Source of the DNA: Carpediemonas membranifera BICM
Lineage: Eukaryota; Protista; Fornicata
Length of the DNA stretch: 64,000 nt
Direction: 5' to 3'
NCBI GenBank assembly: GCA_019828565.1
Contig: JAHDYR010000013.1
Coordinates: 277,556-341,555 of the forward strand
Shown: one piece after another, positions 43,582 to 56,565 of the stretch
How the letters are laid out: each line of letters begins with the position of its first letter
Numbering within the stretch: the stretch's first letter is position 1
The notes under the pieces: generated by a model
What the model was told of the DNA's origin: nothing
Databases searched by the model: none
Seen by the model: the letters and a program-made list of their open reading frames with translations, nothing else
Translations under genes and position numbers: made by a program

Positions 43582-44281
43582 TCCGACAGGCAAGAGAGCG
43601 AGACAGGAATAAATGAATGTATATATGCCTGTCTGGGCATCAGCGCTGTCGTTCAGGCCAATCCACGTTTGTGGATCCGTGCAGTTTATGGTTTCTCGGC
43701 CTCCATGCTACAGCCCTGCCTCACCATCGGTATCGACGTGTACTGCGGCAAGAACAGCTTCACCCAGGGCGAAGATAACGTCCGCCAGGGTCAGCGCCGC
43801 TCCGTCATCGGCATGTCCGCCTGGTACGTCGAAGAGCAGGGCCACCTTGAGACCGTCAACCGTCCCGTCGAGACCATCGCCCGCTTGGCGAGTAAGCGCT
43901 ACACTACCGCTTCGCCAGCCCTCCAAGGCAGCGTTCTGGACCTGCGTCATCTCCGGCGAACTGGAATGATCCAAAGTAACGGTGTAGTGTTCTTTCTGGC
44001 AGCTAATTGTGCATAAGCGAATGCTTTGTGGTCATTTATTGCTCTTTGGCGCAGCAACGCCCACAACTCTTTGGGATACTGTTCTTTTGGTGTTGATGTT
44101 GTTATTGATGTTGATTTCTCCGCTTTTCGCTGCTTTGCGTTGTAATTGCAATGTTTTCTAGTACGTTCCGCGCATCAGATCATTGCTACAACCTGAACTC
44201 GCCATTTTGGCGTTGCAATGAAACTATCCCCTAAAGTGCACACTAAATGAAATCAGAACAATTTGTGGTCAGCTGCGCCAA
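43582..44281. repeat. Internal module M1 (contains PIWI-like fragment ~43705-43885)
   Basis: Near-identical to 47014-47713, 53337-54019, 55801-56483. Confidence 0.95.
43705..43885 (+). pseudogene. Captured Argonaute/PIWI-domain gene fragment (further copies start at 47137, 53460, 55924)
   Basis: LQPCLTIGIDVY...RRSVIGMSA resembles the PIWI first-catalytic-Asp strand (GIDxYH...RRSIAGFVAS); C-ending codon bias like the dynein gene. Confidence 0.6.
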
Positions 44282-44373
44282 GTGGGAAGTTTCAGTCTAC
44301 TCTGGGCGTTAAAAGGTCACCATACTACATCTTCGTGGTTCGGGATACGTGCATTTTCGTGTCAATCAAACTT

Positions 44374-45630
44374 TTACTTCGTTCTCGCCCTTTTGGCCTC
44401 CTCAATCTCCGAGGGGTCACACCCGCTTGTCTTGGCAACAGCACGGACATTGAGGGAGTACTTCTGCTTTTTTCCTTTCTTTGCGGGCTCGACCTCCGGT
44501 GTAATCGGCTCATCTGAGAGCTGTTCCACGTGGTAGTTTGCGGTGAGGCCAAACGCCTTCCTGGCAAAGGGCATCACTGCGCGTGGCACCTTGCCATCCA
44601 AGGCACTCTCAATCTCCGGGCGAATGTCCTTGACGAGATTATAGGTCGTGCACAGATGACAGTGGATAATGAGCGAACTTAAGCCCTTAACTGCATCAGT
44701 GTCGCTTGGGATCAGCTGGCGCTGTATCAGGATGGGGAAATCCTCGTAGTGAAGTAGGATCACTCTGATAATGTTGTGGTAGTGTCTCATCATTGACTCC
44801 GATTCACCCATGCCAATTACCCGCTGCATCACTGCGTTATAGAATGGAGTCTTAACAATCTGAATGCGGGTGGCATTGGCATCAACCTTGTTCGCATCGG
44901 TGAACAACTGGCGTTGATGGATTGCTGCCGTGCGCAACGCATCGACTGGGACTTCGTCTCGCCCAAACTCGACAACCTTACTTATCCAGTCATAAAGGCA
45001 AAGCTGATAAGCAATCCAGCTTCGCATGACCCGGACGTTCCCGCTCCCGAACGAGATCTCGAGCCCCTCGAGCTGTGCACGGCTGGCACCGAAGCCGTTG
45101 ATCCCTGCGAAATCGCTCGCCACGAGAGTGTCATCTCCGTGCGTTTCGAGACTCTCGACCCATTTGGTCAGGCCAGTTGCCTCGGTCGACGTGAGGTTCG
45201 TCGGCTTGGGGTCGCAGAGCAGTCTCTTCTCCTTGGCGGCCTTCAACCGTGTCTTCACAACCGGCGGAGTTGACTTGATTTGGGCCCTGTGTGCGGCCCT
45301 ACGCTGCCTTGCTGTCGGCTTCGAGTCTGGATCGGCCTGCAGTTCAGCGACAAGAGGAGATTGAGGGATATTGGACTGGTAAATGATACCTTCGATGGCA
45401 TCGAGTTCCTGAAGGACATATTCATCATCCTTGTACAGTTCCCGCAAGTATCTAACGAAAGCATTGTCAAACTCACCAGAGATGACACGAGATAGCTTCC
45501 TGGCCTGTCTCTCACCTCTATCCGATATATTCGGTCCACGACATACCTCAACAGCAGCGATAAGCTGCTGGATGTGAAGTTCTGTTGATCCCATTGCTTG
45601 CATAAAATGCACGAACGAAATGGTGAGCAT
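44374..45630 (-). CDS. Hypothetical cargo protein (~410 aa), divergent partner of the HEPN gene
   Basis: Long ORF; no motif recognised; start uncertain. Confidence 0.65.
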   Translation of the reverse strand: MLTISFVHFMQAMGSTELHIQQLIAAVEVCRGPNISDRGERQARKLSRVISGEFDNAFVRYLRELYKDDEYVLQELDAIEGIIYQSNIPQSPLVAELQADPDSKPTARQRRAAHRAQIKSTPPVVKTRLKAAKEKRLLCDPKPTNLTSTEATGLTKWVESLETHGDDTLVASDFAGINGFGASRAQLEGLEISFGSGNVRVMRSWIAYQLCLYDWISKVVEFGRDEVPVDALRTAAIHQRQLFTDANKVDANATRIQIVKTPFYNAVMQRVIGMGESESMMRHYHNIIRVILLHYEDFPILIQRQLIPSDTDAVKGLSSLIIHCHLCTTYNLVKDIRPEIESALDGKVPRAVMPFARKAFGLTANYHVEQLSDEPITPEVEPAKKGKKQKYSLNVRAVAKTSGCDPSEIEEAKRARTK

Positions 45631-54417: not shown

Positions 54418-54823
54418 ATTTCTTTGCACAACCGTTGAGAACGGCACGCTGACCCGCCTGCGTCATATTATCCTGCTGTGACGGTCTCTCCAGGCTCCGG
54501 TCCCCAGACCCAATAGTCGAAGATTAGACAATACCTCTGGATCACACGCCCACATCCCCGGGACACCCAAGGGTCTGTGGGGCTTGCGTGATAACGTACG
54601 TACCCAGTTTGGGATTGGAGTGTACTTTTACTGAGGAAAGCAGACGTAATTGGCCAATCCACGTTTGTGGATCACCTGGTGTCGTCCATACCGGGCGCCT
54701 CTCCGCCACATGCTGTGTTGCTGCGCATGGAAATAAGTGTTAACTGTGTTCTATTGCACGATAGGACGGGGTTATTGACTGATGGGGCTTCTACCTTAAA
54801 TTGCTCGTCATCCACAACTGTGG

Positions 54824-55831
54824 ATGAACCGATATAACAGGATCCATCACCCTGAAAGGTACGCGCGCCAAGAATACGGCCATCGTGAACCTCCTCCGTT
54901 CCTTTCCGCGTGGAACGATGAGCAGCTCCGCATCCTTGGCGATAATGCGCGAGTTCTTCAGCTGCTCGCCATGATGGTCCCTTGGATGCGGAAGATCTTG
55001 GCCTCGCCTGAATTTAACCCCGGGTGCAAGCCCAATAGCACCGAGAAGGACCTCCTCGGCAAAGAGCTCGAACAGGACGTGGATTCATCAAGAATCCTTC
55101 GTGTGATGTCCAATCGAGCGGCGTACAACAAAGCCCATGCCAAGATCATTCGTGATCTCGTTGAGTACCGGAACCGCGCAGCTCACAATGAGCTTGAGCC
55201 CGACACCCTGCCCAAGGTCCTGGAGCTGGTCGAGAGCTTGGCCCAGGCCTTCTCGGTTCCATTGCACGATAACGTCAGGGCGTTCATCGCGCTGCTTAAG
55301 TCGCCAGTGTCGCTCGTTGCGACAAGTGAACATCATGCTCTGACGAAGAAGGTCAGCATTCTTGAGGATGAGATTGAGAGGCTGCGTAGCGGCGGCCGTA
55401 AGACCATGCTCAGGCTGCCAGGTGTCAGGTCTCAGCCGGTGCCCACCACTTTGGAGCAGGCAACGATGACGACTTCGGACGTCGGAGACCTGGATGAGCC
55501 GAGGCCCAGGCCCGAAGACACGGGCAAGACGCGCGGTACGCTCATGTCGCGCACACTGACTGCTAGCCAGGTGGACCAGCTAGCTATGGCCAGAACGCAT
55601 GACCCCCCGCTTGTCCTGTCAGGACGTTGCATCGTGTGCGGGGGCTCATGCGAGACCTCAGAGTGGGCTTGCCGTCGTACCTCAACGACGACACCCAAAG
55701 ATCCTTGCCGAACGTTGATTCGGAAGGTTAAGATTGGGAATACTCGCGACGTCTCTGTCTACCTCACAGATGAGGCATTTGAGTGGGTCAAGCGTCGCGA
55801 TCCGACAGGCAAGAGAGCGAGACAGGAATAA
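54824..55831 (+). CDS. Second copy of the HEPN-domain gene
   Basis: One amino-acid difference (R to M) from 46037-47044. Confidence 0.75.
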   Translation: MNRYNRIHHPERYARQEYGHREPPPFLSAWNDEQLRILGDNARVLQLLAMMVPWMRKILASPEFNPGCKPNSTEKDLLGKELEQDVDSSRILRVMSNRAAYNKAHAKIIRDLVEYRNRAAHNELEPDTLPKVLELVESLAQAFSVPLHDNVRAFIALLKSPVSLVATSEHHALTKKVSILEDEIERLRSGGRKTMLRLPGVRSQPVPTTLEQATMTTSDVGDLDEPRPRPEDTGKTRGTLMSRTLTASQVDQLAMARTHDPPLVLSGRCIVCGGSCETSEWACRRTSTTTPKDPCRTLIRKVKIGNTRDVSVYLTDEAFEWVKRRDPTGKRARQE

Positions 55832-56565
55832 ATGAATGTATATATGCCTGTCTGGGCATCAGCGCTGTCGTTCAGGCCAATCCACGTTTGTGGATCCGTG
55901 CAGTTTATGGTTTCTCGGCCTCCATGCTACAGCCCTGCCTCACCATCGGTATCGACGTGTACTGCGGCAAGAACAGCTTCACCCAGGGCGAAGATAACGT
56001 CCGCCAGGGTCAGCGCCGCTCCGTCATCGGCATGTCCGCCTGGTACGTCGAAGAGCAGGGCCACCTTGAGACCGTCAACCGTCCCGTCGAGACCATCGCC
56101 CGCTTGGCGAGTAAGCGCTACACTACCGCTTCACCAGCCCTCCAAGGCAGCGTTCTGGACCTGCGTCATCTCCGGCGAACTGGAATGATCCAAAGTAACG
56201 GTGTAGTGTTCTTTCTGGCAGCTAATTGTGCATAAGCGAATGCTTTGTGGTCATTTATTGCTCTTTGGCGCAGCAACGCCCACAAACTCTTTGGGATACT
56301 GTTCTTTTGGTGTTGATGTTGTTATTGATGTTGATTTCTCCGCTTTTCGCTGCTTTGCGTTGTAATTGCAATGTTTTCTAGTACATTCCGCGCATCAGAT
56401 CATTGCTACAACCTGAACTCGCCATTTTGGCGTTGCAATGAAACTATCCCCTAAAGTGCACACTAAATGAAATCAGAACAATTCGGGGCAAGTGGCGGCA
56501 TTCATGCAGCTGAATATCTGCTTAGCTTGCCTTACTAGTCACCCTGATATGGCTGATGTGACGGG
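55801..56565. repeat. Internal module M4, abutting the transposase upstream region
   Basis: Copy of M. Confidence 0.95.

Follow-up and report, generated by a model that had tools for sequence, protein, structure and literature searches.

A giant DNA transposon in the genome of the protist Carpediemonas membranifera BICM was found to carry four copies of a 186 bp piece of the coding sequence (CDS) of a host Piwi-type Argonaute gene, here named Piwi1. The transposon lies within a 64,000 nt stretch of contig JAHDYR010000013.1 (assembly GCA_019828565.1, forward strand, positions 277,556 to 341,555), hereafter the window, from whose first base coordinates are counted; coordinates preceded by L and a number refer to other loci. 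Positions 37137-57448 of the window agree exactly with that contig. Capture of host Piwi1 sequence by the transposon is confirmed by comparison of the two sequences. With moderate confidence we read the captured sequence as an anti-silencing device akin to the piwi and aub captures of Drosophila telomeric retrotransposons, newly seen here in a protist DNA transposon. The features that carry this finding are the following.

40055..60429: giant DNA transposon, 20,375 bp, bounded by terminal inverted repeats (TIRs), from self-comparison and comparison of insertions
40055..40106, plus strand: left TIR, 52 bp, starting CAG
60378..60429, minus strand: right TIR, 52 bp
43582-44263, 47014-47695, 53337-54019 and 55801-56483: module M, four full copies of ~680 bp, 99.3-99.9% alike
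43699..43884, plus strand: Piwi fragment A copy 1, 186 bp, Piwi1 codons 562-623, 89.8% nucleotide identity
47131..47316, plus strand: Piwi fragment A copy 2
53454..53639, plus strand: Piwi fragment A copy 3
55918..56103, plus strand: Piwi fragment A copy 4
43705..44016, plus strand: 103-codon open reading frame (ORF), without Pfam or PDB match
41838..42051, minus strand: fifth, partial module with a minus-strand promoter-like motif at 42018-42029, without Piwi part and without AATAAA, facing a PHD-like ORF
43661..43676: palindrome ATCCAC-N4-GTGGAT, recurring in intergenic DNA of the element (45870, 46023)

An ORF beginning M-L-Q-P-C-L-T-I-G-I-D-V-Y starts at 43705, 47137, 53460 and 55924. When its peptide was searched with phmmer against 1.84 billion representative sequences, the best full-length match was an 823 aa C. 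membranifera protein annotated as 'Piwi domain' (KAG9396300.1, the product of Piwi1; 87% identity, E 1.5e-27). Positions 43699-43884 align with the Piwi1 CDS without gaps, 167 of 186 bases being equal and 19 mismatched (E 7e-67), and the copies range from 89.2 to 90.3% identity. An earlier note on this DNA, made from its letters, had proposed four captured Argonaute/PIWI fragments and had named a BLAST comparison with host genes as the check, with a non-Argonaute donor as an outcome that would speak against it; the fragment matches the host Piwi CDS at 89.8%, and the donor is a Piwi-domain gene. The ORF, which the note took as Piwi-coding, is so over codons 1-60, while the remaining tail of its 103 residues is non-Piwi. 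Searched by itself, the fragment is too short a query and had no Pfam or PDB match. A DEAD-box origin of 43885-43960, guessed by eye, was unsupported by search.

Fragment A is an in-frame piece with sharp junctions, located inside TIR-bounded elements, and it changes conserved Piwi residues (H577C, F614V, P565L/Q). Because Piwi1 is an intact gene among housekeeping genes and the element copy is altered at conserved residues, the direction of transfer is from gene to element. The segment 45271-47695 is repeated as 54058-56483 at 99.8% identity; by this comparison the four copies are the product of internal duplication and not of four captures.

C. membranifera has two Piwi-type Argonautes, Piwi1 (L004 10001-12472) and Piwi2 (L014 10001-12434), which are 48% identical. 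Piwi1 matches the Pfam Piwi family (E 7e-38), and its best PDB matches are to Piwi (E 2e-24), ahead of Ago2; by this ranking of PDB matches it is placed as a Piwi-type Argonaute nearest the Piwi clade. The fourth position of the slicer tetrad is Ser in Piwi1, leaving the tetrad incomplete, and His in Piwi2. Piwi1 has lost the fourth catalytic His, which would make Piwi2 the likelier slicer and Piwi1 the main target. Piwi2 was ruled out as donor of fragment A, with which it has 46% amino acid identity and a single nucleotide match, 30-31 of 31 nt over one stretch, explained by shared preferred codons. For codon counts Piwi2 was taken from L014 with its 28-nt intron removed and checked against the database protein. 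A histone H4-like CDS at the same locus (L014 6818, minus strand), directly past the stop of a 174-aa host ORF, is possibly a mis-called or broken histone gene.

Full modules (n = 17, 98.9-100% alike) occur at loci from seven contigs, with one to four copies of fragment A per locus. The transposases of the module-bearing elements are only about 33-37% identical, and two transposase families carry modules. Comparison of these copies shows that modules have been duplicated within elements and exchanged between transposase families. Four elements were reached via the transposase alone; the family-1 and family-3 copies have Piwi sequence and both family-2 copies are without it. Other captured pieces were located as follows.

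L005 9141-9339: Piwi piece B, last ~70 codons of Piwi1, 81% with indels, at one family-3 locus
L006 7435-7491 and L002 9432-9487: Piwi piece C, Piwi1 codons 537-565, 78-80%, at two family-3 loci
L001 2273-2403, also L001 9549-9679, L018 9549-9679 and L007 13516-13646: convergent cassette with insert X

Pieces A, B and C are three separate parts of one 2.5-kb gene within one element group, all with a synonymous excess (pN/pS, the ratio of nonsynonymous to synonymous differences, 0.17-0.28), and B and C carry frameshifts. The greater divergence of B and C from Piwi1 suggests captures earlier than and separate from that of A, and is the only basis for treating these as three independent events. 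In view of the synonymous excess in all three, the pieces may alternatively come from a third Piwi that was lost or is unannotated, and piece B may derive from a paralogous or lost Piwi locus. Pieces B and C turned up without having been selected for. The host comparison set comprised 45 kb of host DNA, and among the other host genes in it one multigene family alone (RCC1-like) gave matches. Piece B itself adjoins an RCC1-like family fragment (L005 8480-9343), host members of which sit 2-5 kb downstream of Piwi1.

Family 2 elements hold the left arm of the module (93% over 74 bp), followed by a ~100-bp coding-like insert X with a facing motif 130 bp away. Insert X has strongly C-ending codons on one strand, with 33 codons between stops, and is probably a piece of another host gene; a metagenome scan for it gave two chance matches only. 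In one family-1 copy a deletion (L003 9033-9036) fuses the first 94 bp of the Piwi piece to the promoter motif of the transposase, which is itself broken by a ~1.1-kb insertion.

The placement of fragment A within the module depends on three short signals.

43679..43690, plus strand: promoter-like motif in the module, 20 nt before fragment A (also 47111, 53434 and 55898); its reverse strand holds a poly(A)-like TAAA
44230..44241, minus strand: promoter-like motif facing fragment A (also 47662-47673, 53986-53997 and 56450-56461)
44035..44040, minus strand: AATAAA, predicted to act as a poly(A) signal, placed between minus motif and fragment A

The element contains 16 matches to the motif GTGCA(C/G/T)TTTA(T/G/A)G where 0.36 would be expected; for the form GTGCACTTTAGG, which faces the fragments on the minus strand, the window has 14 matches against 0.03 expected. 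The promoter-like motif stands 18-40 nt ahead of a number of ORFs, among them those for the transposase, the kinase, the SET-like and the 406-aa product, and ahead of a few host genes. Judged strictly, 7 of the 38 distinct contexts stand before a long-ORF start in the same orientation and 2 in the opposite one (background 1.2%; p 4e-7), from which we infer a core promoter element. A reading of the motif as nothing more than a poly(A) signal seen from the other strand was discarded, as it precedes ORF starts on its own strand, although it may serve both roles. Further sites at 7540, 13829, 27773, 30951, 35227 and 63374 of the window fall in long terminal repeats (LTRs), DIRS-like and LINE (long interspersed nuclear element) retroelements and upstream of an IS630/Tc1-like transposase, and the motif may be a general core promoter of the mobile elements of this genome. 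As for 3' ends, [AGT]TAAA lies near the stop in 17 of 22 host genes, and is found once in sense versus 32 times in antisense in 29 kb of host CDS; TAAA in element ORFs shows a similar bias (2 vs 23).

Each copy of fragment A follows a plus-strand ORF (SET-like, HEPN-like, 444-aa and the HEPN-like duplicate, respectively) and faces a minus-strand GTGCACTTTAGG ~350 bp beyond it, as had been described. The same description had the copies placed for sense plus antisense transcription with the cargo gene upstream. The facing minus motif agrees with this, but the sense transcript would probably start from the module's own plus motif at 43679, which had been overlooked, rather than from cargo; since a poly(A)-like TAAA marks the stop of each of the SET, HEPN and 444-aa ORFs, cargo read-through is an unlikely sense source. 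Along the path of the plus transcript no poly(A)-like signal occurs before the minus motif is passed, and a sense-antisense overlap of at least ~200 nt is predicted in module M. The case for antisense transcription toward the fragment is weakened by AATAAATG on the minus strand ~150 nt before it, a strong predicted terminator, and a second minus-strand poly(A)-like signal lies at 43688, just beyond the fragment. In the sister cassettes the geometry is simpler. Piece C is faced by a minus motif, with the first poly(A)-like signal only just past C, and part of it lies between convergent motifs (L006 15438/15748); as predicted from these signals, the cassettes of piece C and insert X are cleanly convergent and free of the poly(A) obstacle of module M.

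The minus motif heads a ~200-nt unit with homologues elsewhere in the family, which is probably non-coding. Such short units were seen at 44241-44035 (minus), 50875-51070 (plus), L001 2395-2630, L005 9760-9500 (minus), 30756 (minus) and L015 416. Common to them is a TAACAACATCA-like word, set 100-195 nt away from the promoter-like core; their short ORFs are not conserved and they have no Rfam match. The word recurs in a DIRS-like element and at L015, the distant relative. A conserved RNA structure of the antisense strand was unsupported (z -1.7, no Rfam match).

The earlier note had also allowed that the fragment might be too diverged to pair with host mRNA. Fragment A and Piwi1 share perfect runs of up to 20 nt; of 166 21-mers, 32 contain no more than one mismatch and 104 no more than two, and 7 of the 19 mismatches are G:U-compatible; at 31 guide positions the seed is perfect, with at most one mismatch up to position 16. 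Fly captures ~90% identical to the host gene gave piRNAs on it, while those ~79-82% identical did not (PMC13534243). At ~90% versus ~80% identity, fragment A is inside the working range of that comparison and pieces B and C are outside it.

Our preferred explanation starts from the uptake of 186 bp of the Piwi1 CDS into an intergenic module of the transposon, where the fragment stands behind the plus motif and faces a second motif, both presumably active as promoters. The Piwi pathway would then turn element transcripts into small RNAs, among them antisense guides that would bind the mRNA of Piwi1 and, along the 31-nt stretch, that of Piwi2, and silencing of the transposon would thereby lower the silencer. 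Because the poly(A) signal precedes the fragment, antisense cover of fragment A would need read-through of that one signal, an RNA-dependent RNA polymerase, or bulk two-strand repeat small RNAs as in Trichomonas, a metamonad with a Piwi-like Argonaute and bidirectional small RNAs over transposable elements and repeats (PMC7845603). Transcription, small RNAs and Piwi knock-down are what we infer from the sequence arrangement: three pieces of Piwi1, two of which (A and C) are set against a facing motif, and a left arm reused around insert X.

Several observations weigh against an anti-silencing role. The predicted terminator lies ahead of the fragment on the minus strand, and no perfect 21-mers between fragment A and Piwi1 are left. 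No escape signature was detected in the captured window of Piwi1, either by codon adaptation, which is ordinary (rank 454 of 762), or by codon identity between Piwi1 and Piwi2 (17/28 inside vs 80/133 outside the captured region, p = 1.0). Among the 17 copies the fragment is not conserved beyond its flank (variable columns 5/186 vs 10/379). Cargo genes have likewise been exchanged between transposase families, at 94-99% identity, and because RCC1-like family pieces are present too (45699-45797; adjoining piece B), capture is not confined to Piwi.

A more elaborate form of the proposal, which we hold only tentatively, is a reloadable knock-down cassette, in which two facing transposon promoters flank a slot filled at different times by C, A and X, and which would have been traded between transposase families only 33-50% identical. 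Clearly less likely than the anti-silencing reading is incidental, Pack-MULE-like random capture, with an idle Piwi piece that spread along with a recombining promoter/terminator module. This would fit the RCC1-like pieces and insert X, the shuffling of all modules between families, the even conservation of fragment and flank, the poly(A) signal shielding the fragment from the minus motif, and the family-2 elements without Piwi. Yet three differently diverged pieces of one gene, two of them facing a motif, would be improbable among thousands of host genes, an objection that falls if all pieces stem from one old capture of the Piwi locus.

We think it unlikely that the gain lies in self-camouflage or in cis, that is, that silencing the element is made costly so that the host tempers it, or that the carrying copy was helped directly, with no knock-down in trans. 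Maize gene capture with moderated silencing, the 'epigenetic conflict' model of 10.1101/777037, offers a parallel; Son et al. make the case for a gain that goes beyond anti-silencing (PMC13534243), and Piwi1 has no escape signal. It would not account for promoter-like motifs that face each other around A, C and X. Slightly less probable still is a spent device, one that once worked until synonymous drift in the host eroded pairing, as for B and C, so that A no longer silences Piwi1. Differences between fragment A and Piwi1 are mostly synonymous (12 vs 7), a borderline excess with pN/pS 0.17 where a neutral copy should show 0.5 (p 0.017, transitions left uncorrected), and four synonymous changes are assigned to the host branch with Piwi2 as outgroup. 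Fly captures at about 79-82% no longer target, whereas about 90% identity still targets in flies (PMC13534243), the 31 well-paired guide positions persist, and the copies are young and amplified. Least probable by our estimate is a decoy peptide translated from the 103-codon ORF that poisons Piwi complexes: the ORF is open, is annotated in several copies and starts at Piwi Met564, 26 nt after the plus motif at a spacing typical of element genes, but it spans the first strands of the PIWI fold only, has a non-Piwi tail and altered conserved residues, and B and C are frameshifted.

The anti-silencing explanation has its closest parallel in Drosophila, where telomeric retrotransposons carry captured piwi/aub fragments of 140-235 bp and a median of about 90% identity (Son et al. 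2026, PMC13534243) and TART-A has captured nxf2 (Ellison et al. 2020, PMC7785250), a precedent that includes small-RNA data, repeated capture and intra-element amplification. As in those cases, a short, ~90%-identical piece of Piwi-family CDS is found in a transposon, several regions were captured, copies were amplified inside the element, and a non-Piwi host gene was captured too; the sequence features of fly-type captures, a silencing-gene piece at ~90% identity with repeated capture and amplification, are thus present here. In contrast, our carrier is a 20-kb multi-gene cut-and-paste DNA transposon and not a Jockey LINE in telomeric arrays, the host is a unicellular metamonad in which no escape signature was seen, and the module holding the fragment is portable, passes from one transposase family to another and bears facing promoter-like motifs. 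The fly captures rest on small-RNA data, while the C. membranifera case is known from sequence. Gene capture by plant Helitrons, Pack-MULEs and LTR elements, as described by Muyle et al. (10.1101/777037), is similar in that silencing spills onto donor genes; the description there concerns genes in general, whereas in C. membranifera pieces were taken three times from the gene for the silencing effector itself. In the literature searched, capture of Piwi-family fragments as counter-defence was found only for Drosophila telomeric retrotransposons, and a search on Carpediemonas turned up no report of such capture.

Self-comparison of the window gave inverted repeats at 40051-40106 / 60378-60433. 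The element has CAG..CTG termini, and CATG adjoins both ends (40051-40054, 60430-60433). Because CATG borders ends beginning CAG or ending CTG in all five independent insertions compared (5/5), we placed the element at 40055-60429, with TIRs of 52 bp and a CATG duplication of 4 bp; as CATG is palindromic, the exact boundary between end and duplication is the inferred one. The insertion site is the gag-pol region of an LTR retrotransposon, split between its protease and reverse transcriptase parts. Nested mobile elements fill 5750-37017 of the window (chromodomain LTR elements, DIRS-like tyrosine-recombinase elements and a LINE), including a 4.6-kb repeat in inverted orientation (5750-10317 / 32450-37017, 99.8% identity). 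The genes of the transposon are listed below.

56619..59219, plus strand: transposase, 866 aa, RAG1/Transib fold, promoter-like motif ahead at 56590
42862..43566, plus strand: SET-like cargo ORF upstream of module copy 1 (Pfam SET E 0.09, under cut-off)
44374..45594, minus strand: 406-aa cargo ORF, no family assigned, converging on module copy 1, promoter-like motif 18 nt upstream
45699..45797, plus strand: RCC1-like host-family piece, decayed, ~100 bp, duplicate at about 54486-54584 (score 57 vs shuffle maximum 37)
46037..47044, plus strand: HEPN-like cargo ORF upstream of module copy 2 (Pfam E 0.007, under cut-off)
48490..49176, minus strand: protein-kinase cargo ORF (Pfam Pkinase E 1e-19), promoter-like motif 38 nt upstream
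51798..53132, plus strand: 444-aa cargo ORF upstream of module copy 3, last exon of an intron-containing gene
54824-55831, plus strand: HEPN-like cargo ORF, duplicate upstream of module copy 4

The cargo thus holds a single clear kinase; SET, HEPN and PHD matches are weak and below cut-off, and several further ORFs are without family. The last exon of the 444-aa ORF gave no Pfam match, an OTU-like Cys/His spacing being visible by eye only. A tyrosine-recombinase identity considered for two cargo ORFs received no support from searches. A 31-bp inverted repeat (50422-50452 / 50720-50750, ~270 bp apart) lies upstream of a 359-aa cargo ORF.

The nearest relatives of the 866-aa product are C. membranifera proteins, and D358, D441 and E706 are invariant among the relatives aligned. 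Sequence searches of the transposase against Pfam and PDB gave no match. In a Foldseek search with its predicted structure (pLDDT 56, pTM 0.60) the top 38 matches were all RAG1/RAGL/Transib (RAG1, HzTransib, BbRAGL; best E 4.6e-6, prob 1.0). Sequence relatives were found only in Carpediemonas and in assembly GCA_002919055.1; a profile search gave no outside relatives, a weak blank given a length-limited, word-seeded search. The relative in GCA_002919055.1 (L015-L017; 30% identity) lies beside two SET-like genes and a GNAT acetyltransferase, with no Piwi piece in the 8.7 kb inspected, and chromatin-modifier cargo may be a trait of the transposon family.

Like the CMCT clade (PMC12730594), the element has a RAG1/Transib-like fold with a DDE triad, 5'-CA..TG-3' termini (CAG..CTG), a 4-bp CATG duplication within the 2-5 bp range of that clade, and cargo genes. 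It differs in degenerate C(2)C and H(3-4)H motifs in the stretch from the second D to the final E, in a strict CATG target, and in its length of about 20 kb, which accommodates some nine cargo ORFs. The window transposase has R-S-P-F at the expected C(2)C place and no His pair before the final E, and its relatives retain at most one Cys and one His of these motifs. Transib sensu stricto has a 5-bp duplication and a single gene (PMC4411706), against the 4-bp CATG and about ten ORFs found here. Because fold, termini and duplication length fit but neither the C(2)C nor the H(3-4)H motif is present, the carrier is best described, on the modelled fold, as CMCT-like and left out of any named superfamily. 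It apparently belongs to a so far undescribed lineage of giant RAG1-fold transposons.

If the anti-silencing reading is true, distant eukaryote lineages and transposon classes would have converged on the same solution, a piece of about 190 bp and about 90% identity, repeatedly captured and amplified. Were the cassette view also true, it would be a natural counterpart of the convergent-promoter RNA interference (RNAi) vector, directed against host defence genes and renewed as its target drifts. The finding suggests that Piwi1 is the Argonaute that silences transposons in a lineage with an undescribed RNAi pathway, and exact coordinates are now available for small-RNA and degradome tests in a culturable, free-living protist.

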